This document shows positions 29,119-62,410 of a stretch of DNA of 64,000 bases, piece after piece. The position numbers and the translations under genes were made by a program. How positions within the stretch are numbered: the first letter of the stretch is position 1; every line of letters starts with the position of its first letter. Source of the DNA: Marsupella aquatica (Eukaryota > Plantae > Marchantiophyta). The DNA lies in NCBI GenBank assembly GCA_973895155.1, contig OZ316898.1, forward strand, positions 15,158,330 through 15,222,329, given 5' to 3'. The notes under the pieces were generated by a model. It was given only the letters and a program-made list of their open reading frames with translations. It was not told the origin of the DNA and ran no database searches.

Positions 29119-32100
29119 CTAGTATTCATCATAATAGTCATCAGGTTCTTCATAGTCATATGGTAATCCCTCAACATCAACCTCACCAAATTCAGCCATG
29201 CCATCGTCGTCTTCATCTACATCAACCTCATCCTCATTCATATCTACAGCACCTACAGAGCCGTCCTTAGAGTCAACCTCTCTCGTTAGAGACCTTCTGG
29301 CGCTGATTTGCGTAATTCCAGAATCTCCTTGGCTGCCATCCGTTTGGCTGCCAAACCGTGTTCTCTTGCTACTCATATTTAGTGCCTCACTGTCAGCATC
29401 TTCGTCTTCTGTCAGCTTAACTGTAGTCCCATGACTTTGAGATTCCTGCCAACCCAAGAAAGGAGTAACCACGATCTGATCTATAATATTTCAAAAATAA
29501 AGTTGGTAGTCACTTTGATATGGAAAAACAAAGAGCGTGTGACCTTATCCCCCTCCCCCCACCCCTAGCGCAAGAATCCAGCCCAAAGTGAAAAATCATA
29601 AAAGAATTTAGTCGGAACACTCCTCGAACCTAAAGTACTTCGGTTTTTAGGCCTGTTGTTGAGAAATGAATCTACTCAATTCAACTGGACAATAAATGTT
29701 GAGTCTCTTACATCTGTATCAAACAGTTTTGCAAGTACTGTGTAGTCCACCTTTGTGCTCAGCTTCTGCACACAAAGGAAAAGATGACTCAGCCGAAATA
29801 TGCACAGGTCCTAGTACAAATAGGGCCAAGACGTCCAGAAGTGGACTAAGTCACAGTCAGGTGCCTACACGATGAGTAAATGCATCAGTTAATTTCTGCA
29901 TAATTATTAATGACCACGTTATCGACACCTTACCAAAGCTACATGCAACCTACCTGCGTCAAAGTCATTTAAAAATTATATCAACACGAACCTTGCTCTC
30001 CAGCATTTGGCGAGTTGCCTCAGCTGCAGACTGTGCCGGGGGCCTCTTAGCATCATCTGCTCTTTTCTGTTTTCGATCCTGAAACAAGATACCCAATCCC
30101 CACAGGTACATCGTCAGAACCAAACAGTTATGTTACTGACAATTCACATCAGAAATCTCCTTTGGAAGAAACGTGACATCTTGAAGAGGATATACAGACA
30201 TAAAAGTGACACCTTGCCCATAACAATAATCTTCGAAACAGTTCTATGACAAGGGAAGCGGCCTGTCTACTTCTGTGCTACTATTTGACCCGGCAGGAGT
30301 TGATGACCTTCTTCATTTGCGCAACTGCAGCGGCGGCAGCAGCTACAAGCTCCGCCGCACTGGCTGAATTAGATGCTGCTGCTGCAACAGCAGCTGCTCG
30401 TGCCTGCTCCATGGCAGCAAGAGCAGCTTGTTTGGCCTCTTGTTCCTATAATGTCAATCACATTGACAGTTTGAGGTGCTGAACATCAATTTGTGGGCCC
30501 AATTACAAAACATTCTCAGTTGAGCACAGGTACCCAACTTGTTCACTGAGCAACATATTAGCACGAGGAAATATCAGAAGTGAATAACCCCTCAGTTAAA
30601 GTACCAGATTAGTCTGCATTGTGCAAATATGAGTACATATTCAACCTCTGCCTCCTGAAGAAATAGCCAGCACTTCAGGACGATGCAACGTATTCAGAGA
30701 TTCTACACGATACTTCACCACTTAACAAACTGACTTAATGAAATGTTCACAAACCTGAATATATTCTTTATTCATTTCCGTCCATATGATAGTCTTGAGT
30801 CGAACTTCCTCGTCATTGTTCATGTAACCTATCAGCTGCACATTCCAGACCACTTTCAAAACGACCATCGCCAATGATCGTTGTGGTGAAAATTCCTGAG
30901 CTTGTAATGAAAGTTCTTCAATTTGGATCTGAGATTTGAGGTCGTGGAAACTTAAAATCGAGAAAATAACAATCAATAGAGGAGCAGGAATAGACCTCAC
31001 TGTCGTCAATGTCAGACAGACTATCGTCGTCGAGTATGGTATCAGTTCTGTGAACGCTAAGTTTGAGTTCCCCGTTGTCATTTGATCCAGTTTTACCAGC
31101 TGGTGGATCCAAAAGTTGTGGAGACAGATTTTTGGTATTTGCAACATCTGAACTTACTAATTCTGGAGGTCCTTCAAACAAATCTTCCTTCCGATTCATA
31201 CTACCATCAGTAGCTCCCTGACTTTGAACAATTGACTTGTGTACATCTCCATCCCCTAATTTCTCCTTGATACCACTATCGTTAACTAGTGCTTCTGGTC
31301 CAGTTTTGGTACTTTGGGCAAGTTCACCCGCATTTCTGCTTTGATCATCTTTCCTCACACCTCTACCTCTTACCGTTCTACCAATGCGAAGCAATGGCTC
31401 TAAATCATCTATTTCGGCCTCCTCATTGGAGACTTGACCTCTCATCATCCTCCCTCTTCCCCTTCCTCTTCCGCTTGCTCGTTCTCTTCCTCGACCATGA
31501 CAAGTTGGGGGTAAATCGGCTGTATGGCTAACCTTGACGGAAACCAAGTCCCCTGCCTTTCCAGATAAAAGCGCTCCTTTCTTTCGCTCTTTGAGACTCT
31601 TGATTGGTGCACCTTCCTCATCTTCGTCATCAGAGTTCAGGCCTTGACTTTTTAATTGATCTCTTATAGCTTGCATTCGTTGCAACTCTGCCCGCTGAAA
31701 GGCAGGAGGTGCAGATCCGCCCTGGATGCCTCCTGAAACTCTCACAAACTATCAAACAAATTACCCCAGTTATTTACAGAAATATCTTCACCCCATGAAA
31801 CGAAACAGGTAGGCCACCCCATCTGTATTCAACTAGATATCTGCTGGAACACAACGTTTGACTGTGCACATTATGTACGATAGCCGCAACGAAAACCACA
31901 ATTCTCTACACATGCAGGAAGAATTTCAACGTAACACACCATGACATGACTACTCCGACCAGTTCTAACTAGTAAAAATACAGCAATCCCACAATGAAGG
32001 ACCAACAGAAACGAAATAGACAGCATCATGACAAAACTCACCTCCTCATAACAAGGTCGACAAAGTCCATGTGAAAAATGAGCAGTTCCTGTGTCCTTGT

Positions 32101-35612: not shown

Positions 35613-36778
35613 TGTGTCTCTTGCGGGTGGAAAGGCGCCCAGGGTAAAGTGACCACCATGAAATGGATTGAAAATGCCAGATTAAACGACGTATAATGGC
35701 AACTGTGACGAATTAGCAGGACCCCGAAACACGCTGGCACTAAAACTTGCAGCGCACGCTTCTCCGCAACCTTAAGACCTTCCACTTCGTTCTTAAAACG
35801 CTCGTAAGTCTCCAGCTGCGACGTGAGAGTAGATATTGTCCACGCAAAGTCCTTCTGCACAGCTGATTCTAATCTACAAGTTTGAGTGCAAAGCTCTTGT
35901 GACGAGACGCTCCTGAAAGGGATCTATTGTCACAAAATTCCATGAAGTACTCGACAATGTTGAGCTGGTGCGCATCTACACCTGGATTCCCGTCGATGAA
36001 CAACAGTCAGGAATTCAGCTCCGATCAGGAGGTTTAAGAGCAACCCCCGAGATGTTTTGAAACAGCAGCAGTCGGTAAACTATTTTCATAATTGTTGAAT
36101 GTCAGAGAACTAATTTATACAAGGTGCGAAACAATCCGGCGCGTCCCGAGTTTTAACACAAGTGAAGAATTCATCCATCTTTCAGTTTTCAAAGATTTCC
36201 CGTCCTCTTATAAACCTCCTACTCTAGAAATCCAACCCTAATCATCGAAAGATCTCACGTGTATTATTATAGAAACCTTGAAATTGTGCGTCACTACGTG
36301 TGTTTCCTAGGTCCTTGGAGATGTCATCAGTCAGCGCATGCTTCAGCCTACGACCCTCTGCTCCTTGGTCCGGCCCTTTGTCAGTATTTCGGGACCCCGG
36401 CTATCCTCCCTGGCACATTTATGGCGAGCGTATCGACGATAGTGATGCTGTGGGCCAAAGTTTCTAGAAATCCTGACCGTCATCCGACTAAGGACCCGCG
36501 GAGTCGAGTTCGGCTCAATTGGAGGGGGTCCTTAACCAATTTCACTGAGGATTTCGGTCTCTACAGTGGTCCCATCCTTGAACACTCCCGGTGTGCACTT
36601 AATACCGGTATCCACGTAAGTGCAAAACACGTATTTATCGACCCCTGCCATCACAATAAGTCAAGCTCATTAATTTAAATACCAAATTGTTGTAGCTCAT
36701 CAACAACTAACTCCTTTATTCATTCCTCTTCCAATACATATAGTCCCTTAGGCAGGTAGGGTAGTTAGGCGGTTAGTC

Positions 36779-38146
36779 TTAACCAACTGTGGTAGGTCTA
36801 ACCTTAGTTAGGCTAGAGTTAACTCGGGTTACAACATTGGCTCTTATGTCTCCAAAACTTAGGAGGTTCCTGGTGGCTTTGGGTGCGTATATGGCAGAGT
36901 GTATCTTTATCACTGTGCCTTGTGGTAATGTGACGGTTGCAGGTCCGTAGCCCTCCTCTAACTGATGTTGGCCCATTATGGTGGTGACCTTTCGCTGTGA
37001 TGGGGTTATGTGGGTAAAGTATTCCTTATTTTTCAGAATTGAATGTGAGGTCCCACTATCGACTATACATGAGTGAGGATTGTTTGGGTTCTTTGTGTGG
37101 TTCCTTATAATCATGTTGATCTCGGGAAGGATCTCAGCGGAGTCCATGAAAGTGCCATATGTTTCAGGTGCGTTTGTGTTCATGCTTTTCTTATAAAGGG
37201 CTACTAGATGTGAAGGTGCTCTGCAGTGTTTCTGAATGTGCCCTTTAGTTCCACAGCGAAAACAGAGAGGGGGGTTGGTGGTCATATCTCGTTGGTTGTG
37301 CTGGTCCTCGTTGAACTTCGTGCGATTCTGATTATTGTTCTCTCTCGTCCAGGTGTTCCACGAGCTCCTGCCGTTGTATCTCGATCTGCCTTGGCCGCGT
37401 CCTCGGTGGAAATTCCCTCTGCCGCCTCGTTGAAAGTTATTGCTTCGACCCCTATTCGGGCTGCGTCCCCTGGTGCCTGCGCGGCCTCGATAGTTTCTTG
37501 ATTCTCCCCTCTGTGGTGTGGCGTAGTTGGTCTCGGGAGCTGATGTGGACGGGAGGGTCCCCGGTGGGCGTTTCTGCGAATTTTGTAGTAGTAGGAGCTG
37601 GTGCTTTTCAGCCAGCAGCATATGCGCAATTAGTTCGGAGTATTTGGTAAAGGCCATATTCCTGTATTGTGTAGAGAGGATAAGGTTTGAAGAATGAAGA
37701 GTTGACAGTGTTTTTTCGATCTGCTCTGCATCGTTTATTGGTTGGCCGCAGATGGCCAGTTGTGCGATGATCCTGAATAGCTCACTGTTATAATCTGCGA
37801 CCGTCTTGTAGTCTTGGACGCGCAGATTGATCCAGTCGTGGCGAGCTGCGGGTAGGTAGATAGTTCGAATGTGATCGAAACGGGATTGTAGGTCATCCCA
37901 TAGTAGCCGGGGATTGAATTCGTTCATGTATTGTTTCTTCAATGGCTCGCATAGATGGTGCCGAATTAGTATTAAGGCCTTCGCCTTTTGTGGGAGAGTA
38001 GTTCCCGCATCTGTAATGATCGTGTCTTGGAGTTCTTTTGCTGCGAGGTGGGCCTCAATATCTAGAGTCCAGGATAGGTAATTTGCGCCGTCTATACTCA
38101 GAGGTTGAAATAGGAGTTTCTCGATGGAGTTAGTGGGTACAGCCAT
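36779..38146 (-). CDS. Copia Gag plus aspartic protease, reading into the 3' LTR
   Basis: NYLSW..D, ARHDWINLRVQDYK, CFRCGTKGHIQKHC knuckle, IVDSGTSH, APKATRNLLSF. Confidence 0.9.
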   Translation of the reverse strand: MAVPTNSIEKLLFQPLSIDGANYLSWTLDIEAHLAAKELQDTIITDAGTTLPQKAKALILIRHHLCEPLKKQYMNEFNPRLLWDDLQSRFDHIRTIYLPAARHDWINLRVQDYKTVADYNSELFRIIAQLAICGQPINDAEQIEKTLSTLHSSNLILSTQYRNMAFTKYSELIAHMLLAEKHQLLLLQNSQKRPPGTLPSTSAPETNYATPQRGESRNYRGRAGTRGRSPNRGRSNNFQRGGRGNFHRGRGQGRSRYNGRSSWNTWTRENNNQNRTKFNEDQHNQRDMTTNPPLCFRCGTKGHIQKHCRAPSHLVALYKKSMNTNAPETYGTFMDSAEILPEINMIIRNHTKNPNNPHSCIVDSGTSHSILKNKEYFTHITPSQRKVTTIMGQHQLEEGYGPATVTLPQGTVIKIHSAIYAPKATRNLLSFGDIRANVVTRVNSSLTKVRPTTVG

Positions 38147-38461: not shown

Positions 38462-39158
38462 TGTTGTAGCTCATCAACAACTAACTCCTTTATTCATTCC
38501 TCTTCCAATACATATAGTCCCTTAGGCAGGTAGGGTAGTTAGGCGGTTAGTCTTAACCAACTGTGGTAGGTCTAACCTTAGTTAGGCTAGAGTTAACTCG
38601 GGTTACAACACAAATGTATTTTTTGAATAATATAAGAGAAATGAAATGATATCCTATTGGTGAAGGAGAAGACAGAGAGGGCAGGCCTTGGGAAAGGGCT
38701 GAGAAGGTTCAATAGGGCGTCTCAAACTTGGCGCCCGCGTGCTTGGCCGCGGGCACGGGAATCTGAATATTCACGTCCGTAAATTGAGCCGGGACCGACT
38801 TTTCGGTCTTGCAGAAACAAGGGGGGGAGGTTTGACACAGGTTGCGGGCTGCAAAGAAGTTGGGTTTATCCTGAGTTAAGGATTGCCCGCCCGCTTCCGT
38901 TTGAACCCCTCCGCCAACTTTACTCTGCACCATTTTGTCTGGTGCAAATCCACGACATTTCAAAATTCAAGCTTCCCTCTCTCTGCGATACGAGAGTTTG
39001 AGCCTTCCTAATTTTCCGTGTCGAAGTCGGGCATAGACAGAGGAGATATGGCTAATTCTATGTGGGGCGATGTTAGATTTCCAGAGTTGTGTGGGTCTTG
39101 ACTGTCTTTGGATCCTGCACTAGTCGTAGATTCTCAGGTGAATCAAGGCGGAGCAGAC

Positions 39159-45584: not shown

Positions 45585-48500
45585 TGTTACAAACCATATA
45601 CTCCAACAATGTAATGAATCTTATTCATGTGTCCAATATATATACATGAGGTAGTTGAGTTAGATCTTGGTTAGATCTTAACTCGGGTTAAGATATCTAA
45701 TCCTAGTTAGGGTATAACACTCCCCCTTGGGTGTTATAGTTTTTGATGAAATTATAACGACCAATCTAAGTTGCTATCAGTTAGATATCTTCTACCTATG
45801 TTATATTGTGAGATGATGGAGGTGCAGTCTCATTAAAACCTTCCCTACTAACATCATGGAAGGAAAGAGTATTGCCACCTTCCATCTCTTTTGTATGATC
45901 TATTTTGAATGTATGTTAGGTCTAGAATACAATATTGGTTTTATTTGTGTTTTCTATGTTGTTAGGCTCCATGGAGGTTGTTGTCTCCATTGTACTGTAT
46001 TTGAGTTATTGGTGTTCTTGGGGATGTCTTGATCTCCTTTGTGGTAGTATTGATGGTTTGCTTCTTCATAGTAAGTAGTCATTCTTCTTCAATAGTGTTG
46101 TTGTAGAAAAATCCATTCTCCCCCTCAATGTTAGAATCCTGCATCAGTTTCTTAAGACTTCGCATCCCCAAGAGGTGAGTTAGTGTTCTATGAGTAGATG
46201 GGGGTAGAGATTTTGTTAGGATGTCGGCTAGGTTCTTGTCTCCTGAAATCCATTGTATGTCGATGTCTTTTCCTTGTTGTTCATGTGAGAAAAAGAACTT
46301 GGGTGCAATATGTTTTGTGCGTTCACCTTTTATAAATCCTGATTTGATTTGAGTGATGCATGACATATTGTCTTCAAATATAGTTGTAGGCATGGTTAAG
46401 TTTTGTTTACCTGTTTGAATAAGAATATGGTCTATTACTTGCCTTAGCCATAAACATTCTCTAGTAGCCTCATAAAGGGCAATAATTTCTGAATGGTTTG
46501 AAGAAGTGGTTGCAAGTGTTTGCTTAGTACTTCTCCAAGATATTGGTGTTGATCCCATTAAGAATATATATCCTGTTTGAGATCTACCGTCATGTGGATC
46601 AGAAAGGTATCCGGCGTCAACATATCCTTTCAACTTATGGTTATCCTCATTAGGAAAATATAGGCCGAGGTCGGATGTACCATTAAGGTATCTGAAAATC
46701 CGTTTTAGCCCGTTCCAATGTCTTATAGTGGGTTGAGAACTATGTCTCGCCAGTAGGTTGACAGAAAATGCTATGTCTGGTCTTGTTTGATTAGATAAAA
46801 ACATAAGAGCACCGATAGCCGAAAGGTATGGCATATCTGAACCTAATATAGGTTTGAATTCTTCTCTTTTTCTAAACATATCCTTATCCTTATCAAGGGT
46901 ACGGATGTCCATGGGGGATTTAACAGGCTTCAACATATTCATTCTGAATTGTTGTAATGTTTTCTTTGTGTAAGTAGTTTGGTGTAAAAGAATGCCTTTT
47001 TCCAAATGTTCAAATTGGAGTCCAATGCAATAAGAAGTTCTGCCCATGTCTCTCATTTCAAATACGCTTTTTAGTGTTTGCATTGACTCATTCATCATCT
47101 TTTTCGTACCAAGGAGGTTGAGGTCATCAACATATATAGCGATGATTATGAATTCAGGTCCTTCATGCTTTATAAATAAGCAAGGAGCTATTTCAGAATT
47201 CTTATATCCCATGGATATCATTTGATTTTTGAATCTCTGGTACCATGTACGTCCACTCTGTTTGAGTCCGTAAAGGGAACTAAGGACTTGAACTGCATAC
47301 CGGGTCTTTGCTCCGGTTGCCTTATGATCCTTTCTAGGTTCTTGTAATGCAATTGCTTTGGAAGCATTGTGGAGTACCAATTTGTTCATATAGTCAAATG
47401 ATTTTGCACTATTATCATTGTGCATATGTGGATTATGTTTTGAATTTGCATGGAAGTTTACTCTCTCAATGAGTTCAGGCGGGGCTTCCATATAAATCAC
47501 GTTGTCCAGTTTACCATAAAGGTAAGCGGTAACAACATCCATTTGTTGCATTAGCAGTTTGTTGTGTATAGCAAATGCTATCAAATAGCGGTATGTGGTG
47601 ACGTCCATGACAGGTGAGTATGTCAGGGCATAGTCAGTTCCATAAACTTGTGTGTAGCCTTTAGCAACCAGCCTAGCTTTATATCTTAGTATTTCTCCTT
47701 GTGAGTTTCGCTTTTTAACAAATGTCATCCTATATCCCGTGAGGTGTTGGTCTAGGGAAGCTACGGTTATAGGTCCAAAGACTTTTCTAGATATCAAGGA
47801 GTCTAATTCGGAGTTCATGGCCTCTTGCCATTTGCTCCAATCTATTTGTTTTTGTGCTTCGGTCACTGATTTGGGATCTGGTAGGTTGTTAATATCATTT
47901 GCTACATGAGAGGCAAATATGAGATCAGGGTTGATCATCATTCTATCTAGTATGTTACCAGTGGAGTTGTAGTTAATGGCTATCTCTGGTTGGGATGGTG
48001 GTCTCGTATGGTTGGTTGGTGTAGGAGGTCTACGCTTGTTTCTAGGTTGTTTGTCGACTGCTCCTAGTGGTCTCCCTCTTTTGAGTTGTGGGAGTGTGTC
48101 AGAGGATAGTCTCTGATCTTGTATGCGGGATGGTGTATTAGCCGCTGGTATATGGGATTTAGTTACATGTGTAGCATCAGCAAATGAGTCGGGTAAGGAC
48201 TCCATGATCTTGGTTAATTGAAGTATCCTATTGACTTCTAGTTCAGTTTGGTTAGTTCGAGGATCTGGGCAAAGTGCCGGGGAAGCTTGCCATGTGAGTG
48301 TTTTGGTGTATGACTTATGTTTTCCCTCTTGCGTGTTAATGGTTGGGAAAATGTTTTCATAGAAATGGCAATCGCTGAAACGGGCTTTGAATATGTCAGT
48401 GGTTGTAGGTTCCATGTATCGTATGATAGATGTTGAGTCAAATCCTACATAGATGCCTTTCCTCCGTTGTGGTCCCATTTTGGTTCTATGAGGACCTAGT

Positions 48501-51500
48501 ATGGGGATGAGGACTTGGCATCCAAATATTCTTAGGTGTGAGATATTTGGTGGTTGCCCGAAAGCTAGGTGATAAGGTGTGTTGCTGTTAAAGGCTGATG
48601 GTCTATAAAGGAGTAGGGTTGCAGCATGTAATACTGCATGGCCCCATGCTGATGTTGGGAGTGATGATTGCATTAATAGTGGTCTAGCAATCTGTTGTAT
48701 ACGTTTAATAAGTGACTCCGCTAGTCCATTCTGGAAGTGGACATGGGGTACATTATGTTGGGAGTCAATTCCATTTATTGTGCAGAAGTCATCAAAGGTT
48801 CTAGAAGTGAATTCACCAGCTCCATCAGTTCTAAGGGTTCTAATTGGATTTTCAGGGAATTGTGACCTTAGTCTTAAGATGTGTGTAAGGATTCTGGGGA
48901 AGACTAGGTTGCGGGTTGATAATAAGGATACTCTGGACCACTTAGAACTGGCGTCTATCACTACCAAGAAGTATCGAAATGGTCCACTTGGTGGGTCGAT
49001 TGGTCCACATACGTCCGCATGGAGTCTCTCAAAGGAATGCGGGGATATGGTTTTTGGTTTTTGGGATGGAGGGGGTGGTAATCATCTTGCCCTGGGAGCA
49101 GGCAATGCATGGTTTTTGGAATGACCTTGGGTGACAGGTCTTTGGTATTCCTGTTGAGTTGTTGACTATCCTATGGAACATGCTGGTTCCTGGGTGTCCC
49201 AATCTCATGTGCCATGTCTCGGTGATATCTTTGGATTCGACCCCTAGGTTATAACATTGGTTTTGGGTGATGTAGAACCCTGAAGGGTGGGTCGAGATGG
49301 TTTCTCTAATGATTATCCCTCCTGGTGAGTGTGATGTTATTTGCAGTACTTCTTGTAAGTTTTGGATGTTTGTTTGGATATGGTAGTTGTTGGCTCTAAT
49401 ATCTTGGAAACTCAGAAGGTTCCTTCTTGCTTTGGGGGCATATATGGCTGATGGGCATCTAATTATTGTGCCTCCAGGGAGAGTTAAGGTGGCTCTTCCG
49501 TGACCTTCTTCTATTTGGCTTTCTCCGGTTATAGTGATTATTTGTCTTTGGGAAGGGATAATTTCATGGAAATATTTTCTATTTCGGAGGATGGTGTGTG
49601 ATGTACCGCTGTCTATAATGCATACATCTATATCCTCTAGCTCAGGTGGGGGGTCTACCATATAAATTTCTGGTATAATCTCAGGTGATTCCAGGTAAAC
49701 TCCATGGGTTTCAAGTTTTGATCCATCTAAACTTTGTTTGTAGAGTTTCACAAGATGGGCTGGGGCATGGCATACCTTTTTGGTGTGACCTTTTGTACCG
49801 CACCTGAAGCATGTGATTGAGCTGTTTGAGTTGTTTCTTGGCTTCTCTTGGTAGTCGTTGCGGCCTCGTTTCCATGTGGTCCTTCCGGGGAAATTGTTTC
49901 TTCCACGGCCCCTTCCGCGGTTGCTGAATCCTCCTCTGGGTCCTCCTCTGTAGGAGTAGTTCGATCGTCCTCCCTTCATTCCTCTTCCCCTATATGAGCC
50001 TCTCCCCCTGAATTTACTTGTATTTCTATCATAAGGTGTGGTCAAGTTAGCTTCTCTCAGTTTCTCGTTTATAATTAAGTTCGTCTCAGTGGTGGCAGGT
50101 ATTGGGAGTGTACCCGGGGGTCTATCCTTTGCATTTGTCATGAGTAGGATTGAGTTTTGTTCTGCCAAGAGCATGTGTGCTATTAGTGCTGAGTATTTAG
50201 TGAATGCCATGTTTCTATACTGGTTTGAGATTACTAAGTTTGTAGGGTGAAATGTTGCTAGTGTCTTTTCGATTTGTTGTTTATCATTCACTGGTTCACC
50301 GCACATTTGGAGTTCGTTCGAGATGCGGAACATCTCGCTGTTGTATAAGTCTACCATTTTGAAATCTTGCACTCTTAAGGTTACCCATGCTTGTAGCGCA
50401 TTTGGTAAGTTTATAGTTGTTATGTGTTCAAATCTCTCTTTCAATGCATCCCATAGGAGCCTTGGGTTGTATATCGTCTTATATTGATGTTTTAATGGTT
50501 CTATTAAGTGGTGTCTTAGTAGGACTAATGCTTGGGCCTTCTGGTATTGGTCCACCCCAATGTCGGTATGTATTGTTTCTGGGATTCTTTTTGCGGTGAG
50601 GTTAACCTCCACGTCTATTGTCCAATCATTATAGTTCTTCCCGTCAATTCTTAGTGCTGGGAATAATAGTTTCTCCATTGCCATCTTGGGCTAATATGGG
50701 TTCACCTTGTAAATGTATGCAATTAAGGAGGGTTCAATGGAGTTTTGCACTTAGCTATTATTTTGTGGTGGATCAGCTTCGCTTGCTCCTTTCTTTTGGT
50801 ATTCACTATTCTTCAGGTTTGGTCCCGGTATGATTGGATTCTTCCTTCTTAGGTGGGTGGAAAGGAGAATTGGGGGTCGCTGCCCTTGCTTGTACGTTTT
50901 CGGTCTGGGGCTCGCGTTTGCTCTCTTCGCTATGGTGTGCTTGGTCTTTCTCTCTCAGTCCTGCGGTGCTCTATTGCTCAGGTCTTCTTTCGTTCTCTGT
51001 GGATGGTGCTGCTTTTTTTTTTCTTGAACCCAATTCCTTCGGCTCTCTTCAGTGTGTTAATTTGCCTGGGACTCTTCTATGTTCGCGTTTTATCTCTCAG
51101 AGTCTTCTCTGCAATTTTTGTGTATTTCTTTATTCTGCTCTTCTTGTGTGGGATCGATCCGCTTTGACTTCAGTCAGGGTCCCTATACGGGTGGTTTCAA
51201 TTCGGTGTGGGATGGTGTGCCGATGAAGTCCTTATCGATCTTCTGTTTCGTTTCGTCTTGTTTCAACGCTGCGCTGTCTCAAGTGTGGGTCCGAGAGTCA
51301 GTGGCTACAGGCGGCGAAGCGTCGAATTGTGAATTCAGTGGCTACATGCGGCGAGCGTCGAATTGTGTCTGAGTTGTGTCTGGATTGTGTGGTGCTATCT
51401 GCGGAACGGCGCCTCATGGCTTTGTCCGGGGCTTGGTCTTCGTGTTGAGTTGGCGCTATCGTTCCTTCAAGTGTGCTATGCGTCGTCTGCGGGATTTGTC

Positions 51501-51983
51501 TTGAGTTGCTGTGGGTTTCAAGAAGTTCTACTCTTCTGCCGATTTCCTTTCGTTTCAATTCCTTCGGATTAGACTGCGGCTGGCCCTTCGTGTTTCTGTT
51601 TTCGTTCTGTCTCTATGGTCCTACTGTTTGCCTATTGCTGGCTGGCTCACGAGATCTCTTGATGGTGGTCTATCGTTCTCAAGCCATAGACGAACAGTGG
51701 CCCATATCATTCCACTCAAGGTTTCTATCAAGAAATGGCCCTCAAATGTGGCCAAAAGTGCTCATCTTTTGGGAAAAACTCTTCGGATCTCCCCTTATGG
51801 TTTAGCACCTCTTCGTGGAGAAAAAAAATTGCATTCATGCTGATAACGTGTTACAAACCATATACTCCAACAATGTAATGAATCTTATTCATGTGTCCAA
51901 TATATATACATGAGGTAGTTGAGTTAGATCTTGGTTAGATCTTAACTCGGGTTAAGATATCTAATCCTAGTTAGGGTATAACA
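45585..51983 (-). mobile_element. Full-length young Ty1/Copia (Bianca-like) element
   Basis: Apparently identical 135-bp LTRs at 45585-45719 and 51849-51983; TSD ATCCA; PBS 51835-51848; PPT (AAGGGGGAG) 45720-45728. Confidence 0.97.
46079..50684 (-). CDS. Copia gag-pol (Gag-PR-IN-RT-RH) with a single +1 frameshift near 49031
   Basis: ORFs 49029-50684 and 46079-48967 join as ..IPAFL-ERLHADVCGP if one T is removed. Motifs DSGTSH, TDGAGEF, RTKMGPQRR, SHIPAAN, YVDDL, IFEDN and ADILTK. Confidence 0.93.
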
Positions 51984-52305
51984 ATCCAACATATTTTTGT
52001 TTGATTAAGAAACTCAGAAGTGAAAGGAAGCTTTCAACAGTAATTTTTGGCGAAAGCAAATCCAACTAAATTCTAGCGCCACATTCCTTCCATGAAAATG
52101 GCCTGAAATTTTAGCACCATAGTTAGTACAGTATAGTTTGGAAACTTTCAGGTCAACCTGTCTCAGGTTCGGAAAATTAATCCGTGGACCCCCATGTTAT
52201 TTTAGAGACAGTTATCTAGAAAGCCTAGATGGACCTCCAAATCTTAAGAAAAAAATTTCAAAAATGGACAAGTCAATGTTTGACACTTGAAACAATTGTT
52301 AAACT

Positions 52306-52664
52306 TGTCATGCCGAGGGACAATGCCTCTTATGCACATCGGCATGTCCCTCGCCTGCCCGCTAGGTATGTAGTTAGGGCTAGTGTACTACCTGAGTTAG
52401 CGACATGTTCTTGTAGCAAGTCTGGGCCGTTCTTGAAGCAAATGTGCTTGTTAGTGTGACGCCAGGACTTTGCTTGCTTAGGGCATGTCTTTCTTTGTGG
52501 GTTTTTCAGTTCTTCTTGAATCGCTGTTGACAGAGCTCAGATAGTGCTTGTCGGTTCCGTACACGGGATTCACACAGTGATTCGTTAGATGCTCCCGGCC
52601 GATCTTGGCATCCTGCCGATTTTCGATTCGATTTCAGTACAATTGTTTCTCTTACGCCTTTTAT
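52306..52664 (+). repeat. Repeat A1 (359 bp)
   Basis: Matches A2 (60045-60403) with 11 substitutions and no indels. Confidence 0.95.
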
Positions 52665-52676
52665 TCAAGAAGAACT
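52663..52676 (+). promoter_or_regulatory. Putative self-priming PBS
   Basis: ATTCAAGAAGAACT is the exact reverse complement of 52508-52521 (AGTTCTTCTTGAAT) inside A. No TGG-type tRNA PBS follows A1. Confidence 0.75.
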
Positions 52677-53142
52677 CTGTCGCCGGGTTAGCGGTGAAGG
52701 GAAGAAGATCGGAGACGCTGTGCTTCTCAATTACTCGAGACAGTTGACGCTTTTCCGCTGATGCCGGTGCAATTTCTATGGAAAAATGCTGAGCGATGGG
52801 GTGGAAGTTATGATTTTAAGTGTATACACTTAAGTATACACTTAAGTCAAACAAGCCCCCCTCCCTCGTTTTCCTTCACGTTTTTTTTGCCCAGGCTTTT
52901 CTTTTTCGGCCACAACCTGTTTCGCGACTTGCTGTTATCGATTGCCGCATCTACGCCGACTGCACAGGGCGCACCTGTGCTCGCGTTTTTAACAACTCCC
53001 TAGTACGACTGCCTCGGCCACCGCGCGCCCCTTTTCTTTCGCCCTTTTTCGCATTGCCAAACCTCAAAGTTCCTCCCTCCGTTTGTTTTCCTGCCTTTAT
53101 CTCGCAGGCTGTGCGTATAGGGCATTGTGTCTCCCACTGCCA

Positions 53143-53615
53143 GCATTTAATTAAGGAGAGGAGGGGGAGCAAGTACAAGCCGGGAGTCGAGAGGAGAAGG
53201 CACGGAGGCCTATGAAGCATTAAAGAGGAGGGAGGGGGGAGCCGAGTACCAGCCACGGAGGGGAGGGGGAAGCGCAAGGAGGGCACAAAGCCCTATGAGG
53301 AATTAAAAGAGGGGGAGAGAGGGAGTACATACGACTCCCTTCTCAGGAGTCCTACAGGGCACGAAGCCCACTTAGCAGCATTCAAGAGGAGAGGGGGAGT
53401 TGAAGCGAAAGCAGGGCACGAGGCCCTAGGCAGCTCTGAAGCATTTAAGAGGAGGGGGGGGCAGTACATTCGAACTCCCTCACACGGGAGTCTTTTGCCA
53501 GGGCACGAGGCCCAAATTGCATTGAAGGAGAGGAGGGGGGGAGTTCGTAGCCCCTTTTCGGGAGCACATAAGGTGGGGCACGAAGCCCTATGGAGGGCTC
53601 ATGCCATTAAGAGGG
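53143..53615 (+). repeat. Array of six structured units: GCATT.AAG-polypurine / variable spacer / GGGC-ACGA(A/G)-GCCC hairpin
   Basis: Hairpins at 53198, 53281, 53357, 53414, 53501 and 53576; purine tracts start near 53143, 53217, 53300, 53378, 53441 and 53519. Confidence 0.85.
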
Positions 53616-55550
53616 CCCGGTTTCTTTGCCCCCTCGCGACGTCTTTTCTCCTCTTTCCGGCCACCTACGAGCTTGCCTCGGCTATTTGCGGGCCACTTGG
53701 AGGTAGTTTGTTTTGCCAAATTCCCCGAGAGGAAGCAGCTACGACAGCAGGCCACTCATCCTACTCCTACTTCCACTCCCCCACCAGCTAGGAAGGCTCC
53801 TACTACATCAGTTGCTCCTCCTTCCAGTGGCAAAGCATCTAGTGCTAACAAATTGCCCAAGCAGCAACAGAAGCAACCAGCTCAGAAGGAGGCTCACAAC
53901 GCACAGGCAACTCAACTCCAGTCTCTGACTCATGAGGTTGAGTCCCTACGTGCCCAATTTGCCAACATCAAAGGCAAGTCCACTGCCTCTGCTGGTCCTT
54001 CTCAACCGGCTGGTCACGTGCAACCCATCCCTGGCCCAGGCACCACTGACAGTTTAGCACCTCTACCCTGCTCTTTCTATGGCTTGCCATTTGATGCTCA
54101 TATGGGTGAGTGTGTGCTGTCCTCTGCTACACAGCCTGGCCTTGCAGTAGAATTTTCAGATTCATTCTGCCCTTCCTATTTTGCTTACCAGCAGGCCAGT
54201 ACTGCCTCCCGTATTGCTTCCACACGCCGCATTGTACAGGCTGATGGTCTTGCTGCTAGTCCTATGACTAGAGCCAGGGGAGCTCGGGCTGTCATGCCCC
54301 AATCTTTTCAGCCACTCACACTTGCTGAAGAGTGCACCTTGTTGGCGAGGGGGGAGGGAGCTGCAGCTACATCCATTCCACCACTAGGTGTTGCTGACAT
54401 TTCACAGGGAGCTGTTTTTCTTGAGCTGCTTGAGCATTTCACCTCCGGTATGGCACAAAGGATTCTTACCACTCCACTTTTCAGTTGCCATGATTTACAG
54501 CTGGATGCTAGAGTTGTCATCAGAGCGCTCGAGGGTTCACTGCATTCTTCATCAGCCCCTGTGACACCGGTTTTGGAGGTCCAATCTCATGTACATACTG
54601 GACCTTCTTCTTCTCCATCACATGTTTCCACTGGTTTGGCTGCCCCAGTACCGATTGCTGCTGATTGTGTGACCAGAGCTACACTTGATTCTGGTCATGC
54701 TGCTCCATCTTTCCTGGCTATGCTGTTGAGTGGGAAGACCGTGGACACTAACTCCCTTCACAAGGTACCTCATCATTTGCCAAAAGTGGTGCCTAGTGAC
54801 AGGACTTTAGTTTCCACCACCATTGCCATTGTTGACAACAGGAATTCAGCAGTTAAGTTGGAGGGTCACACTCCTCAGGTGGTCATGCTAGACACAGGCG
54901 CTCAACCAGTGATCTTGGGCATTCAGTTTGCCAAGAAGATGGGACTGCTGACTGATCATTTACAGCAATCCAAGTGGCACATTCGGACTGCTAGTGGCAC
55001 TGTGGAGGATGTGCTGGGTGAGAGTTCTACTTTACTCACTCTCACTTTTAATGGAGGTACAGATCAGGAACTGCATTTCCCAGTCAGATGTTTGGTTACC
55101 AATGCCACTACGTATGATGTGCTCATTGGCCAGGAGGCTTTGTTCCCACCAGGTTTTACCATTGACAACTGGCATGAGCATGCATACTACAGAGTCGATT
55201 GGCATACGGATGGCTCACACTTGGGCTACATTCCACTTGATTTGCATGGTGCCCATACTCCTATGGCTCACCACTGTGTGTTGAAAGCAGTGCACACAGC
55301 TACCTATGTTAACCACCCATTGCAGGATTGGATTGAGGAGGATGATGATGAGGTGGCTACTGCACATGCTGCTGCACGTATAGCAGCACTTTCCAGCAAC
55401 GTGGATCATCAACCAGAGGTGGTACAACGGTTCCAAGCAGCCCATGGACCTTTGATGGCTGCATTGCACAAATTTGAGGACCTTGGGTAGCATAATGGAC
55501 AACCAATAGCCCCAATCTTGAGCGCACCAGTTACATGGACTCCTCCTTCA

Positions 55551-56500
55551 GATGGCCTTACATTGCTTGAGCTTTTTGGTGGCATTTCTACAGGCCTGGA
55601 AGCTCTCCTACAGTCTGGCATGGTGGTGAAGTAGTACATCTATGTGGATATTGATCCAGGTGCAAGGCAAGTGGCTGAATCCCGTCTGCTGGAATTTTCA
55701 GAGCGATTTCCTCAGCAATTTCCACACAGTGCATGGACGTCTGCATTTTCTTTCTTTCCTCCAGATATCCAGCTTGTCCAGCACCGGCACTTAACCCTTC
55801 TTGGCTCCCTTGATTTGATCATAGCTGGTTGGGAATGCCAAGGGTTTTCAGCTGCTGGTCACGGTGCTGGACTGCATGATTCTCGTTCTGGCCTTTTCAC
55901 AGCATTGGTTCAGATTCTCACCTGGGCTCAATCCCTTTATCCTGCTGTTGGTTATATCATTGAGAATACTCTATCTTAGTTTGACCAGCGTCCACAGGTC
56001 AAAGAGGATTTTAGTGTGGTCCAGCACTACTTGGGACCACCCCTTCTCATTGATGCAGTGCACTGTGATTCTTATGCACATCGTCTTCGTAACTTTTGGA
56101 CTAACCTTGCACCACCTTCCTTGCTGGAGATGGCTCTTCACCACACATCCAGGGACACTAACCTTACAGTGGACCAGATTTTGGATCCTGACAGTTCTTG
56201 CCAACCAGTTACACGGCAAGAGCCAGCACCTTGGTATCCAGCTAATACCATTGGACAACCCCGTGCTGCTTGGCCTACATTTGTGTCCTTTCCAGGTGCA
56301 CATGCTTTTCAGGGTGATGGTCCTGGGCTGGTTTATCGACATTCTACCGGTACATGGGATGAACCTAGTCCTGAGGAGAGAGAACGGGCTATGGGCTTCC
56401 AACCCGGTACTACAGGTCACACCAAAATCACCAGGCTGGCCAGGAATGCTTTACTTGGCCGGGTAATGGATCTCAATGCTCTCACTTGGCTTCTGGTCAC
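55551..56500 (+). CDS. DNMT3-like C5 cytosine DNA methyltransferase domain within pol (two in-frame stops)
   Basis: I LLELFGGISTG, II YIYVDID, IV DLIIAGWECQGFS, V DSRSGLF, VI YIIENT, VIII AHRLRNFWTNL, IX ERERAMGF, X RNALLGR. Confidence 0.88.
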
Positions 56501-59500
56501 TTGCATCCTTTTTCAGATGTACATTCCTCCAGCATTAGGAGCTCCAGCCTTACCACTCCACAGTGCTGCTGCATGGCATCCAGACCAGGTGCACTTACCT
56601 CTGTCCAACACTCACCACTTCAGTCCAAGTGTTGGGGGGGAGGAGGTCCCTTGTAATGTGGCTGACATTATTTCTGAGTTTCATGGTGTGGACCACTTCA
56701 GATCAGCAGGTACAACAGGCCTTGGAGAGGCCTCATTACCTTATCAGCAGCATGCTAGCAGCTTGGACAGTGGAGAGGCTGGCACTTCTGGCTCTTCAAG
56801 CACGAGTACATCAGGTCCTATTCCTAGTGTTGCCAACTACACATTTATCATGGGCAACCACCTGAGTAAAAGACAGAAGGACCAGCTGCTGAATTTGCTC
56901 CTCAAGCATGAGAATGTGTTTGCTTTCTCTATGAAGGACTTGGGTAAGTGCAAGACTATGCAGTTCTCCATTGAGTTGGCTGATGAAACACCTATCTTCA
57001 GGCGGAGACACCGTTTGAGTAAGCATGAGTGGCAGCTGGTGGATGAGAGGTGCCAAGAGCTCTATGAAGCTAGTCTTATTCAGCCATCTACATCAGATTT
57101 TGCAGCAGCTACAGTGATGCCAGCAAAGAAGGATTCCAGTGGATTGTGGACAGAGAAGTGCATGTGTGGGGACTACAGGCCATTGAACCTGGTCACACCC
57201 CAGGACAGGTACCCCATGCCACGGCCAGAGGAGCTATTTGACAGTATTGGAGACTCAAACATCTTCACTCTTGTGGATCTAAGGCAAGGCTTCAACCAGA
57301 TTTTGCTGCTTGCAAAGGATCGCAAGAAAACAGCTTTCCATGGTAGTAACCAACTATGGGAGTGGTTGGTGATGCCATTTGGCTTGAAGAATGCGCCCAT
57401 ATTCTTTCAAAGAGTCATGGACCAGGTTCTTCAAGGTGCTGAGTTTCTGAAATGCTACATTGATGATGTGTTGGTCCACAGCAAAGGATTTGACCAGCAT
57501 CTACTTGACCTTGAGGAGCTATTCATGAGGCTTAAGAAGGTGAACCTAAAGATACACCCCAAGAAGTGTGAATTTGCTGTCAGATCAGTAGTATACCTTG
57601 GGCATCGCATTCTTCCAAATGGAACCATGGCTCACTGGGCCAAGGTGGTATCCATCTTGGAAATGCCCACTCCTACCGATGTTCACACTTTGAGGAGCTT
57701 TATTGGGTTGTGCAATTACTACCGGATCTACATCAAAGATTTCAGTATCATTGCACACCCATTGTACTCTTTGTTGAAAAAGAATGTGCCTTGGACATGG
57801 AGTACAGATGCTGAGGCAGCATTTGCCACTTTGAAGGAGAAGCTCTCAGAATACCCAGTGCTAAGAAGACCTGATTTCAGCAAGGTCTTTGTGCTACACA
57901 CAGATTGGAGTGCCCTTGGGATTGGTGCCATTCTGGGCCAGCATGATGAGGAAGGTAAAGAGTACGTCATTGCCTATGCATCCAGGAGCAACAATCAGGC
58001 AGAGAGTCATTATTCTTCTTATGAGGGTGAATGCCTTGCTGTTGTGTGGGTTGTCATACATTACAGGCCCTACCTCTATGGGACCAGGTTTGTTCTCTAC
58101 ACCGACCACCAACCCTTGAAGTGGTTGATGACCAACGACAAGCTTACTGGCAAGCTTGCTCGTTGGGCACTCATACTCCAGGAGTATGATTTTGAGGTAA
58201 TTCATAGGCCTGGTGTGACACATCAAAATGCTGACACTATGTCCCGCAGCCCTTTGATTGCCTCTGATGATCCCTCAGATGCACGGCAGGATTTTGACCA
58301 GGTTTCCATCCTGCCTACATTTCATGCATCTACCTATCTTGCTTTGCTGCCATGCTACATTGTTGACCAACCTGTGGTGGACATATGGGAGGACAGCGAC
58401 ACTCTTAGATTTTTGCAGGATGGGGAGTACCCCACCCATGTTACTGCTGCCCAGAGAGACCGAATTCAGCAAAGGTCCAAGCGCTACTTGTGGAAGGGAG
58501 ATCATCTTGTGCGCTGCTTGCCAGACAGGGAAGTGGTGGTTCCACCCATTCATGAGAGGGTTGGCCTTATCCGTAAAGTACATTCTGAGCTTGGTCATTT
58601 TGGTGTTAAGAGGACTTATAGCCTCTTGGTCCCCCATTATCATTGGAGAGGCATGCATGGCCAGGTTCGAGATGTTATTTCCCGGTGTGAGCAGTGTGAT
58701 AGGGTAAGGACTTCTTTCACATCTCGGCAACCCACACTTCATCCACTCCCTATTCAGGGCATGTTTATCGCTGGTCATGTGATTTGGCTGGAGAATTACC
58801 CCTCACATCTCGGGGTAATCTCTACATCATGATCATGATAGAGCATTTCTCCAAGTGGATAGAACTTGTGGCATTGCTGGATAAGACCTCCCGTAGCACC
58901 AGCCAGGCATTCCTACAACAAGTTCTCAGCCGCTTTGGAGCTTGTGCAGAATGTCTCACTGACCAGGGATCAGAGTTCAGAGGAGAGTTCCAGGAGCTGC
59001 TTGATCAGGCCCTCATTGATCATCACCGGACATCATGAGATCACCCACAGGCAGATGGCTTGGCAGAGCGCATGGTTCAGACATGCAAGAAGGGTCTCCG
59101 GAAGATCTGCCTCACCAAAAACAAGGAGGATTGGGACCTGACCTTACCCTACATTGCCATGGGGTATATGATGTCCAGACATGCATCACTGTCTAACTTT
59201 TCTCCCTACTTCTTGTTGTTTGGTCGTCACCCAATTCCACCTTCTGCTATTGCTGCTCACATGCTTCAGGTGGTGGACTTGGATTCAGCTGTGACTTGGT
59301 CTGATGTGATCTCTGAGAGGGCTGCCCTATTCAGGAGGGTTATGCCCATGGCCTTGGAGAATTTGGCCATTGCATAGCACAGGGACACACTGCGTTATGC
59401 ACACACACGAGGGGGCACTTTTCAGCCCAAGGTCAGGAAGTTTGATGTGGGAGATTTTGTGTACTTGCAGCGGCAAGCTAACGACACCCTGGACACCTCT

Positions 59501-59673
59501 ACCAGTCGTACTATTCTTAGGGTTAAAGCTATTCGACCGTCTGGAGTGCTAGAGTTACAAGGGGCAGATGGGCGCACAATTGCTGACAATGCCAAGAACT
59601 GCGCCCCTTGTCATCTGCCTAACCTAGATCCCACCATTGTGACTTCTACTTGGATTCCACCTGTGGACTACCC

Positions 59674-59812
59674 TTGCAAGGTGTGTTTGCGAATTGATGA
59701 TGCTGACCAGATGCTGCTGTGTGACAATTGCAATGAAGGGTACCATCTTTTCTGCCTTCGGCCTGAACTTACCCAGGTGCCAGAAGGGTTATGGTTTTGC
59801 CCTTCTTGTGCT
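59674..59812 (+). CDS. PHD finger at the integrase C-terminus
   Basis: CKVC...MLLCDNC..GYHLFC..P.L..VPEG.WFCPSC (C4HC3). Confidence 0.95.
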
Positions 59813-59859
59813 CCACGTGCTACCTGAATTTTCTTCAGCCCTCCTTTTGGCTATGGTCT

Positions 59860-59866
59860 GGGGGGG
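59860..59866 (+). promoter_or_regulatory. Putative PPT (G7) directly before B1
   Basis: tct-GGGGGGG|ATACAGAGG, about 30 bp after the pol stop. Confidence 0.65.
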
Positions 59867-60579
59867 ATACAGAGGTTTACACTTCCACTACGTACATACC
59901 ACTTCATTTGCTTTTTCTTGACACTTGTGAATGTGATTGGACTTTTTCTATGCATGTTGGTTGCTAGCAGCTTGCACATATGCCTTGCCGGTGACTTGTA
60001 TGTTTTTGATACACTATGGCTACGATACTATATGCCACGACAACTGTCATGCCGAGGGACAGTGCCTCTTATGCACATCGGCATGTCCCTCGCCTGCCCG
60101 CTAGGTATGTAGTTAGGGCTAGTGTACTACCTGAGTTAGCGACATGTTCTTGTAGCAAGTCTGGGCCGTTCTTGAAGCAAATGTGCTTGTTAGTGTGACG
60201 CCAGGACTTTGCTTGCTTAGGGCATGTCTTTCTTTGTTTTCTTTTCAGTTCTTCTTGAATCGCTGTTGACAGAGCTCAAACAGTGCTCGTCAGTTCCGTA
60301 CACGGGATTCACACAGTGATTCGTTAGATGCTCCCGGCCGATCTTGGCATCCTGCCGGTTTTCGATTCGATTTCCGTACAATTGTTTCTCTTACGCCTTT
60401 TATATACAGAGGTTTACACCTCCACTACGTACATACCACTTCATTTGCTTTTTCTTGGCACTTGTGAATGTGATTGGACTTTTTCTATGCATGTTGGTTG
60501 CTAGCAGCTTGCACATATGCCTTGCCGGTGACTTGTATGTTTTTGATACACTATGGCTACGATACTATATGTCACGACA
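59867..60579 (+). repeat. B1 (59867-60042) - AC - A2 (60045-60403) - B2 (60404-60579)
   Basis: B1 and B2 are 176 bp with 3 substitutions. Junctions are CACGACA-AC-TGTCATG and TTTTAT|ATACAG. Confidence 0.95.
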
Positions 60580-62410
60580 AACTTACCAAGACAACCATAA
60601 TTAACATCAATCACAAAACAAGCTGCAATGTGAACTATTGTTTAATGTGTGGGCAGCTTAATTGCCCACTTCAGCAAAACGGTGATCGATTTCCTTCACA
60701 TTATCGAAGGGATACTGGATGCATTCATGTTGCATCGAAAATAATCACTTTTCAATTCCTACATGCAGATAGACAAAGAGAGAGAAGTCATCGGTGTCAT
60801 CAAATCACTAACCTTGCATAATTGTTTAAGACAAAATTTCATGGAAACAAATTTCCAATTGTGGAATTCAGAATGGATAGAAAGTTAGAAAATTTTAGAA
60901 ATTCATGACCAATTTAGTACTTATAAAATCTCCCAATGTCACACTCATTAGAAAGCTAGAGAACATTGGAAACTTATAATCTCCTCATAACTCAACTAAA
61001 TCTATCAATGTTAAGTTCATTAAACAACTAAAGAAATTCTAAAATTCATAATCTCCTTAGTACTCGATAAAATCTATCAATTTTAGGTTTATTCTCATGG
61101 AAGGGGTCAACATTTCAGGGGTTGTACAACAAAATTTCTATTCACATTAGAGATTACAAAATCTCAGGTAAAATCTATTTTTCAAATTGTTTACTCAATT
61201 CTTATCGAATGGTGACAATTCTGAGCTCATCACGACCGTCTCTTCAAGATCTTTCCAACGCCATATTATACGTGAGTTTTCATTATGATTTGACTCAACA
61301 ATGTCAAATCAAAAATTATTGTCAGGAAAATTTTATGTTTCATTCTTTTTATCTTTTTATCTTTTGATTTGCATGTCAATTTTTTACATTCCTTTTTATG
61401 GTATGACGTCCTAGTTTTTACAGCAAAGTTGCCACAAACACGAATGTAGAAGTTAATTTTATCCAAAAACAAGTCCCTTCCTGTTTGTGACATGTCATGA
61501 TGATGTGGCACACTATGGAACCAGGAATTTTGGAAAGGACCTCTAATGGGGGTCCGTAATGAAAAATCTGCACATCCCGGGGAAGAGAGTCTTTTGAAAA
61601 AGCAATAATTAAACGGAATACATTATTGACAGGACATGCTGTTGTGATATCCGATCTGAATGGTACATACCGGTTTTTAAATGCATAGTCTTTAGACTGA
61701 TAAAACAATATACCTTTTATTTTGACAAAATGTGACAATATGGTTTGGGCCAGTTTTCAGCTCCCATTTCAAGCTGAACTTTACTTTAGCGAAAAAGAGC
61801 TACGCTACCTCCATGAGCCTCCCAGTCCCTGTACATTTTGGTCAATCCTTCCCTAAATTGTACATTCCTGCCCAAAAGGAAATCCCATACTCTACTAGTG
61901 CAATTTTTGCTCCATGGAAGAATGATAAAATGCCATGCATTAGAAAATTTAAACCAATGGAATTAGGAGCTTACTGGTAAGTGTTCATGTACACTTATCA
62001 AGATTATGCACTTATATAGTTGTGAGTTATCCAAAAAGTGCAAACTCATGGAGGAAACGTGAAGACGCAACGCCATGCAGTTAGCTAGAATTTGCACTTA
62101 AGTAATGTGCAATTATAGAGGGATGATCGTATTCCAATAAACGACAGCAAGATCCGCTAACCTTCTTGGCAAACAGAGTTTATGTTGTACAGAGCGGTAA
62201 CTTTCTGCCCGTGAATTTACCGAACTACACTATCACGTATCAAACAACCAGAGGGCTTTAATCATCGGCGTAAATCCTGTCAGGATAAGAGGTTACCGGT
62301 GTGTAACCATTTCTACAGGGGCTTGTTATAGTCATAATCTGGTGTCCTAAAACTTTGAGTAGATAACCTCTTTCCGGGCAGGAGTTACGTAAGCTAATGC
62401 AGGGCAGGGT

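Follow-up and report, generated by a model that had tools for sequence, protein, structure and literature searches.

A probable Ty3/Gypsy retrotransposon of Marsupella aquatica with split direct repeats and a candidate integrase palindrome inside its long terminal repeat

A 64,000-nucleotide stretch of the genome of the liverwort Marsupella aquatica (the window; GenBank assembly GCA_973895155.1, contig OZ316898.1, positions 15,158,330 to 15,222,329 of the forward strand) contains at positions 52306-60579 a retroelement whose direct repeats A and B do not form two identical long terminal repeats (LTRs) but are split in the order A1-body-B1-NN-A2-B2, where NN is a 2-bp spacer. When its coding content and its anatomy are considered together, the element is probably a Ty3/Gypsy retrotransposon of the clade that carries a DNMT3-like C5 cytosine methyltransferase and a PHD finger (published example, KnitGypsy-Dnmt3), and the favoured explanation of the split repeats is that self-primed cDNA is joined end to end and then cut by the DDE integrase at a palindrome internal to the LTR.

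The A...B-A-B arrangement is far beyond chance. The two A repeats align without gaps and with 11 differences (96.9% identity over 359 bp), the two B repeats differ at three positions (98.3% identity over 176 bp), and these are the sole long direct repeats in the element's part of the window. The outer ends of the element are TG..CA. A preliminary description, made from the window sequence alone, had located A1, B1, the AC spacer, A2, B2, a run of seven G before B1, the TG..CA ends and the AACT target-site duplication (TSD) exactly to the base. Coordinates of all features are given in Table 1.

Recurrence of the layout in mosses, liverworts and algae

The closest proteins in a protein search belong to Calypogeia fissa (81%), a plant contig of a JGI metagenome (76%), Marchantia and Closterium. 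Scanning of metagenomes with an alignment of the methyltransferase (DNMT) domain yielded 80 loci of one family, here called Sphagnum-type; part of the DNMT region of this family matches a Sphagnum magellanicum protein at 93% identity, which identifies the host as Sphagnum or a close relative. The A and B repeats were mapped over all loci (designated by L numbers), and flanks were clustered so that loci seen twice count once, which left 27 distinct ends on the 5′ side and 31 on the 3′ side, with the window counted in both. Of the 31 3′ ends, 14 are B-NN-A-B, in two more the B2 after B-NN-A is truncated or absent, and 15 consist of a B alone. In the chromosome-scale assembly of C. fissa, a young copy (L090) has the same layout as the window element, with A1 and A2 99.3% identical and B1 and B2 100% identical, and the B-NN-A-B tail is also present in a second C. 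fissa locus, Marchantia, an ENA metagenome contig and Closterium. Three loci that have B-NN-A-B but no detectable A1 (L001, L003 and L006) were used for 3′ structure only. The layout is thus common to the whole family and is not a one-off.

These observations bear on the most trivial reading, namely that the window holds a one-off rearrangement, an assembly artefact, or an A-body-B copy lying in tandem beside an A-B unit. The window does contain a single copy, and two metagenome contigs have tandem LTRs of the kind that assemblers produce, but this reading is refuted and retains practically no probability: the same structure is found at 14 other distinct Sphagnum-type loci and in the chromosome-scale Calypogeia assembly, a single TSD flanks the whole composite, and the gap between B1 and A2 is always exactly 2 bp. 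The preliminary description's reading of the architecture survives both checks that it had named as able to refute it: A..BAB with distinct 4-bp TSDs recurs at independent insertions in Sphagnum-type loci and Calypogeia, the other copies were checked for ordinary A+B LTRs and lack them, and the contiguity of B1-A2-B2 was checked and is present in the C. fissa assembly.

Eleven perfect 4-bp duplications with ten different sequences were found in the window and its relatives. Split-repeat copies are flanked by AACT (window), GGTC (L002), CCAA (L021), CCAC (L026), ATAA (L050), CCAT (L056) and CACC (L090, Calypogeia), and copies with B only by AATT (L042), CATC (L046), GTAT (L062) and AACT (L082); in five older copies the flanks agree at three of the four positions. 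Variation of the duplication from copy to copy implies a staggered cut by a DDE enzyme. Site-specific recombination leaves instead a fixed short repeat (PMC7192593), and the site-specific insertion without variable duplications that characterizes DIRS elements is not seen in the window element or its relatives. The repeat layout does match that of PAT, Ngaro and TOC1, as would be expected if a circle were inserted in the manner of DIRS by a tyrosine recombinase supplied in trans, with the integrase a relic. This explanation is very improbable, because the 4-bp flanks take ten sequences where a recombinase would give one, because no tyrosine recombinase (PF00589-type) matched any frame piece of the element or of its intact relatives, and because the whole clade has kept its inverted TG..CA ends together with the rve core and H2C2 domain.

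Several observations concern individual loci. Locus L089 was considered as another case of B-A-B and was dropped, since its 789-bp repeats have terminal inverted repeats of their own and no G-tract, and constitute a separate transposon; the two units (L089:6554-7342 and 7892-8680) are 99.7% identical, have terminal inverted repeats of about 25 nt and lie directly downstream of a DNMT-PHD Gypsy pol. In another PHD-bearing Gypsy element, L087, no terminal repeats and no C5 DNMT were found; its polyprotein (P0070, L087:6540-11138) has a precomputed Pfam match to a Dam-like N6-adenine methyltransferase (PF05869) of a kind known from DIRS elements. In and around the Calypogeia copy, 100% identical repeats of 70-350 bp occur in both orientations (L090:1-3850, 8082-8300, 12155-12557, 13606-13673 and 15486-15639) and resemble recent insertions of a small non-autonomous transposon.

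Priming sites, the replicative LTR and its two joints

Directly after A1 stand 12 bases, TCAAGAAGAACT, that pair perfectly with AGTTCTTCTTGA at 52508-52519; counting the final two bases of A, the duplex extends to 14 bp. Corresponding places in the Sphagnum-type family are occupied by the pair AGTTTTTCTAGA / TCTAGAAAAACT, with a further paired change in one sub-lineage; the Calypogeia copy has another pair of 14 nt, and in the distant relatives L088 (16 nt) and L004 (12 nt) the pairs are unrelated. Almost every copy shows complementarity of 12-16 nt at this position, and compensatory changes occur in five or more lineages; from this covariation the primer-binding site (PBS) is predicted to be of the Tf1 self-priming type. 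The preliminary description was right to place a PBS directly after A1; the site is a self-priming one and not a tRNA site, judging from the match to the self-primer (a tRNA-type PBS was not searched for). Self-priming in turn implies that the RNA starts inside A, roughly 130-160 nt before its end, and that the end of A is the end of U5.

At the other end of the body, a GGTCTG(6-8) tract directly before B1 is conserved. The L055/L056 lineage has a different plus-strand primer tract 138 bp upstream, and there both B copies (B1 at L056:14073-14386) measure 314 bp instead of 176 bp; it is therefore the plus-strand primer that determines where B2 begins on its left side. B1 and B2 of any one copy are as similar to each other as its A1 and A2 are, as a result of homogenization, which indicates that the A pair and the B pair are both renewed in each cycle. 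The replicative LTR is thus predicted to be B-NN-A, as the preliminary description had deduced from its PBS and polypurine tract (PPT), and the deduction is now backed by the self-priming PBS, the G-tract and the homogenization within copies.

The spacer between B1 and A2 is GC in both Calypogeia copies, Marchantia, L005, Closterium and L088, whereas in decayed Sphagnum-type copies and the window it is GC, AC, GT or AT (AC in the window). AC, GT and AT are transition derivatives of GC. The CAG/CTG context is a known target of CHG methylation in plants. Flipping of the joint was entertained as an origin of the AC and GT spacers and was dropped, since all four spacers are GC or its transition derivatives and the allelic pair L035/L036 differs at this place. 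Derivation of the variants from GC makes the functional joint a palindrome, ...CGACA-GC-TGTCATG..., perfect over 16 bp in L088. Apart from this palindrome, no stretch of A or B is conserved between Closterium and liverworts. The tips of the replicative LTR (in the window, ATACAG at the start of B and TTTTAT at the end of A) are neither conserved nor TG/CA.

The joint between A2 and B2 behaves differently. In nine loci the U5 end abuts the U3 start exactly; 2 nt are missing in three or four loci and 3 nt in one, L026 has lost 147 nt of B, and L010 has an altered junction sequence of ambiguous origin. The length of this joint is changed in 6 of 16 loci, compared to none of 16 for the B-NN-A joint. 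Such variability fits a joint that would be newly made from cDNA ends at each insertion. The 2-nt loss could stem from AT microhomology or from a 14-nt primer in place of a 12-nt primer.

Polar insertion and a model for its origin

The favoured model begins with steps that are backed by the sequences: self-priming, priming at the PPT, a B-NN-A LTR, and integration at TG/CA ends with a stagger of 4 bp. Transcription would start in A1 at the self-primer motif (near 52508) and presumably end in A2. The 5′ end of the RNA would fold back onto the PBS after A1 and prime the minus strand as in Tf1, the G-rich tract before B1 would prime the plus strand, and ordinary strand transfers would produce a linear cDNA with LTR B-NN-A. 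Because the termini of this cDNA are without integrase sites and the sole TG/CA inverted repeat is internal to the LTR, the termini should first be joined; the A end, attached head to tail to the start of B, would form a 2-LTR-type joint that corresponds to the A2-B2 junction. The DDE integrase would then nick the palindrome on the 3′ side of each CA, in the LTR copy 5′ of gag, and nicks 2 bp apart would leave two recessed CA-3′OH ends with 2-nt 5′ overhangs, like 3′-processed retroviral ends. Recessed CA-3′OH ends are the normal substrate for strand transfer. Inserted by integrase with a 4-bp stagger, they would give A-body-B-NN-A-B with TG..CA ends and a 4-bp duplication.

If the palindromes of both LTR copies were equivalent, one would expect the extra repeats at either end of the element. 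Forms with the order A-B-A-body-B were searched for, and none of the 27 distinct 5′ ends has A-B ahead of A1, whereas an extra A(-B) is present at 16 of the 31 distinct 3′ ends. A split of 0 versus 16 has a chance of about 1.5e-5 under random choice, and the insertion process is therefore polar. This result weighs against the version proposed in the preliminary description, in which host end-joining closes a 2-LTR circle and integrase opens either of its two identical B-A joints. Formally, opening a 2-LTR circle at one B-A joint gives the integrated form, the A2-B2 junction is a blunt joint of U5 end and U3 start with the small losses typical of circle junctions, and the integrases of foamy virus and HIV-1 are documented to cleave palindromic LTR-LTR junctions of this kind (PMC1180852, PMC1905944, PMC4372172). 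Random cutting of such a circle, however, predicts A-B-A-body-B in about half of insertions, and this explanation is accordingly unlikely, if the best placed of the alternatives. A polar route compatible with the favoured model might dispense with host ligation: a late-finishing plus strand could switch template from end to end, its 3′ end leaving the A end for the completed left end, where it would copy B, and in the resulting molecule only the left palindrome would adjoin a strand break.

Polarity might also arise if integrase cut the palindrome of the left LTR in linear cDNA and inserted the A-side end together with a short B fragment, the free blunt ends being ligated by the cell afterwards. 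This route yields the right product, explains the variable A2-B2 joint including the 147-bp loss in L026, and would be polar if only the left LTR were duplex when integrase acts. It requires concerted integration of ends from two separate fragments, for which we know of no precedent, and nothing in the sequences separates it from the favoured model; it is rated as unlikely, marginally more so than the closed circle.

The copies with B only at the 3′ end can be accounted for in part by deletion. Loci L021 (B-A-B) and L029 (B only) are the same locus, with flanks 96-97% identical and the same CCAA duplication, so that the B-only copy L029 arose by deletion between B1 and B2. Recombination of B1 with B2 later removes A2-B2 in about half of the copies, as shown for at least L029, and the solo A-B units of L001 and L061 are the product expected of recombination between A1 and A2. 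The elements of L021 and L029, which come from two related genomes or haplotypes, are 87-92% identical, less than their flanks, as expected if methylated elements mutate faster.

Several considerations weigh against the model of end-joined cDNA cut at an internal palindrome. A closed symmetric circle predicts both repeat orders equally, and the observed 0 versus 16 means that a polar step is missing from the model. The steps of cDNA-end joining, palindrome nicking and integration are deduced from the anatomy of the integrated copies. Some A-body-B copies could be primary products for which integrase used two internal sites of linear cDNA. The length differences at the A2-B2 joint lie in an AT-AT context where later slippage is possible, and the polyadenylation site in A was not located. 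Finally, L004:9188-11455 and L088:11634-13977 each contain two tandem full LTRs, 100% identical (1134 and 1172 bp, respectively), between the PPT and the self-priming PBS, and the L088 contig is circular with ends that overlap by 400 bp; these may be real 2-LTR circles, or they may be walks of the assembly graph through repeats that are double-covered in A-body-B-A-B copies.

A broader interpretation is offered tentatively, with less assurance than the model itself: an ancient streptophyte clade would have moved its integrase sites from the LTR tips to an internal palindrome, end-joined cDNA would have become the obligatory substrate, and the polar step may explain the split repeats of PAT, Ngaro and TOC1 as well, irrespective of the enzyme by which those are inserted. 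Retrovirology treats 2-LTR junction forms as by-products, while the anatomy of this clade suggests that such a form or its equivalent is a productive intermediate for a DDE integrase. The family constitutes a natural system in which the origin of split direct repeats may be studied, with copies in the transformable model plant Marchantia.

Coding content, surroundings and known systems

A single long frame from 53526 encodes in order a gag-like region, protease, DNMT, reverse transcriptase, RNase H, the H2C2 zinc domain, the DDE core and a PHD finger (Table 1). Broken reading frames were searched piece by piece. The integrase frame contains a frameshift between approximately 58703 and 58829 and in-frame stops at 59036-59038 and 59375-59377; with five in-frame stops in all and this frameshift, the window copy is decayed and dead. 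The order protease-reverse transcriptase-RNase H-integrase, with H2C2 and an rve DDE core, is that of Ty3/Gypsy elements, as are the TG..CA termini, the short variable TSD, the PBS adjoining U5 and the PPT adjoining U3. Two identical direct LTRs bounding the integrated element, a further Ty3/Gypsy trait, are absent, their place being taken by A-body-B-NN-A-B. LTR finders assume two identical LTRs and would mis-bound or miss the clade, members of which are abundant in Sphagnum-type contigs and also occur in Calypogeia, Marchantia and Closterium.

Table 1. Features of the Marsupella aquatica element (positions in the window)
Feature	Positions	Strand	Remarks
TSD, left copy AACT	52302..52305	+	matches 60580-60583
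Repeat A1, 359 bp, start TGTCATG	52306..52664	+	96.9% identity with A2; last ~157 nt probably R-U5
Self-primer motif in A1 (AGTTCTTCTTGA plus AT)	52508..52521	+	putative 5′ end of genomic RNA; exact complement of bases after A1
Self-priming PBS TCAAGAAGAACT, adjoining 3′ end of A1	52665..52676	+	complement of self-primer motif
gag-like region and aspartic protease (protease ~54852-55142)	53526..55487	+	PF13975, PF13650; in-frame stop 55488-55490 ends region
DNMT3-like C5 cytosine methyltransferase domain	55491..56450	+	PF00145; in-frame stops 55632-55634, 55977-55979
Reverse transcriptase 57159-57612, RNase H 57798-58188	57159..58188	+	PF00078, PF17917, PF17919
Integrase: H2C2 zinc domain 58545-58713, DDE core from 58766	58545..59374	+	PF17921, PF00665
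PHD finger, integrase C-terminus	59675..59809	+	PF00628; pol stop codon 59825-59827
Polypurine-type plus-strand primer site GGTCTGGGGGGG	59855..59866	+	motif precedes B1 in relatives too; G7 run 59860-59866
Repeat B1, 176 bp, end CACGACA	59867..60042	+	pairwise comparison with B2
Internal B-A joint CACGACA-AC-TGTCATG	60036..60051	.	putative integrase recognition palindrome; AC spacer 60043-60044
Repeat A2, 359 bp	60045..60403	+	pairwise comparison with A1
Repeat B2, 176 bp	60404..60579	+	A2-B2 joint 60403/60404, U5 end joined to U3 start
TSD, right copy AACT	60580..60583	+	matches left copy

Of the preliminary description's account of the coding region, the Ty3-type reverse transcriptase, RNase H and DDE integrase without a recombinase are upheld by Pfam matches; it had missed the DNMT3-like methyltransferase and had not named the C-terminal PHD finger. 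The DNMT domain is inserted between protease and reverse transcriptase and is conserved in all relatives aligned. A profile built from six relatives has DNMT3A and DNMT3B as its best matches of solved structure (E ~5e-14), ahead of bacterial M.HhaI and plant DRM2. A DNMT3-like methyltransferase and a PHD reader in one polyprotein link integration, chromatin reading and DNA methylation.

Motif IV of the methyltransferase is ECQ in the copies from the window, the Sphagnum-type family, Calypogeia and Closterium (L006) and PCQ in those of Marchantia, L005 and L004; every copy compared retains the catalytic cysteine. In the distant relative L004 the DNMT domain (L004:5471-6319) lies between RNase H and integrase instead of between protease and reverse transcriptase, and was either moved or acquired twice in the clade.

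The surroundings of the element include other repeats. A Ty1/copia element on the minus strand (45585-51987), 318 bp upstream of A1, has an ordinary layout that contrasts with the split repeats: its 139-bp LTRs are 99-100% identical, end in TG..CA and are flanked by the 5-bp duplication ATCCA, and its open reading frames encode copia gag, pre-integrase, SH3 and RVT_2 domains. Tandem repeats occur at 72-660 (196 bp, three copies), at 899-1177 (57-bp spacing) and at 5031-5216 (a 93-bp pair). A 149-bp pair at 36688-36836 and 38462-38610, 100% identical and 1774 bp apart, is possibly a small terminal-repeat element, and an 82% repeat pair lies at 27693-27800 and 29985-30092, 2292 bp apart.

The preliminary description knew of no account of this architecture for a Ty3/Gypsy element, but such a layout had been reported in 2018 for KnitGypsy-Dnmt3 of the green alga Klebsormidium nitens, which combines a DIRS-like order of repeats with Gypsy domains (de Mendoza et al. 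2018, PMC5890265, Fig. 4c legend). That paper and its supplements are silent on duplications, priming (PBS), integrase sites and mechanism, and the name KnitGypsy-Dnmt3 was found in no other paper in the literature searched; the A...B-A-B Gypsy architecture has thus been known since 2018 but hardly studied. KnitGypsy-Dnmt3 and the window element share a Gypsy Pol with a DNMT3-type domain inside and A-coding-B-A-B repeats, and differ in host (an alga as opposed to a bryophyte); the likeness is drawn from the published description and not from sequence. No Klebsormidium protein was among the protein-search matches, one search having been swamped by generic Gypsy candidates. KnitGypsy-Dnmt3 appears to be an algal member of the same clade. 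New are the 4-bp TSDs that vary between copies, a self-priming PBS that covaries with its self-primer, a palindrome conserved inside the LTR, the variation at the A-B joint, the strictly 3′ position of the extra repeats, copies derived by deletion, and the occurrence in mosses, liverworts and Zygnematophyceae.

Self-priming of the Tf1 type is known in plants from the Tcn1 clade (PMC6317226). Like Tf1/Sushi and plant Tcn1 elements, the window element has a motif at the RNA 5′ end complementary to a PBS adjoining U5, which is predicted here in silico. Those elements have ordinary LTRs, terminal integrase sites and a chromodomain, whereas the window element has putative internal integrase sites and a DNMT, and the chromodomain at the integrase C-terminus is replaced by a PHD finger. 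The 2-LTR-circle junctions of foamy virus and HIV-1 offer a parallel for the joint, in that a palindrome of CA-spacer-TG cut by integrase gives integration-competent ends, as is proposed for the clade described here. In the retroviruses this is a side route and the palindrome forms only upon circularization, whereas here it is permanent in each LTR, has a 2-bp spacer and apparently serves the sole route.

PAT, Ngaro, VIPER and TOC1 share with the window element the order A1-body-B1-A2-B2, with the extra pair always 3′, and some of them carry a methyltransferase. They encode a tyrosine recombinase without protease and DDE integrase, and any flanking repeat is site-specific; the window element shares the split direct repeats of the DIRS order but instead of a tyrosine recombinase has a protease and a DDE integrase, together with TG..CA ends, variable 4-bp TSDs, a PPT and a self-priming PBS. 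Given the polarity that these tyrosine-recombinase elements and the present clade have in common, a shared step of reverse transcription is worth considering.

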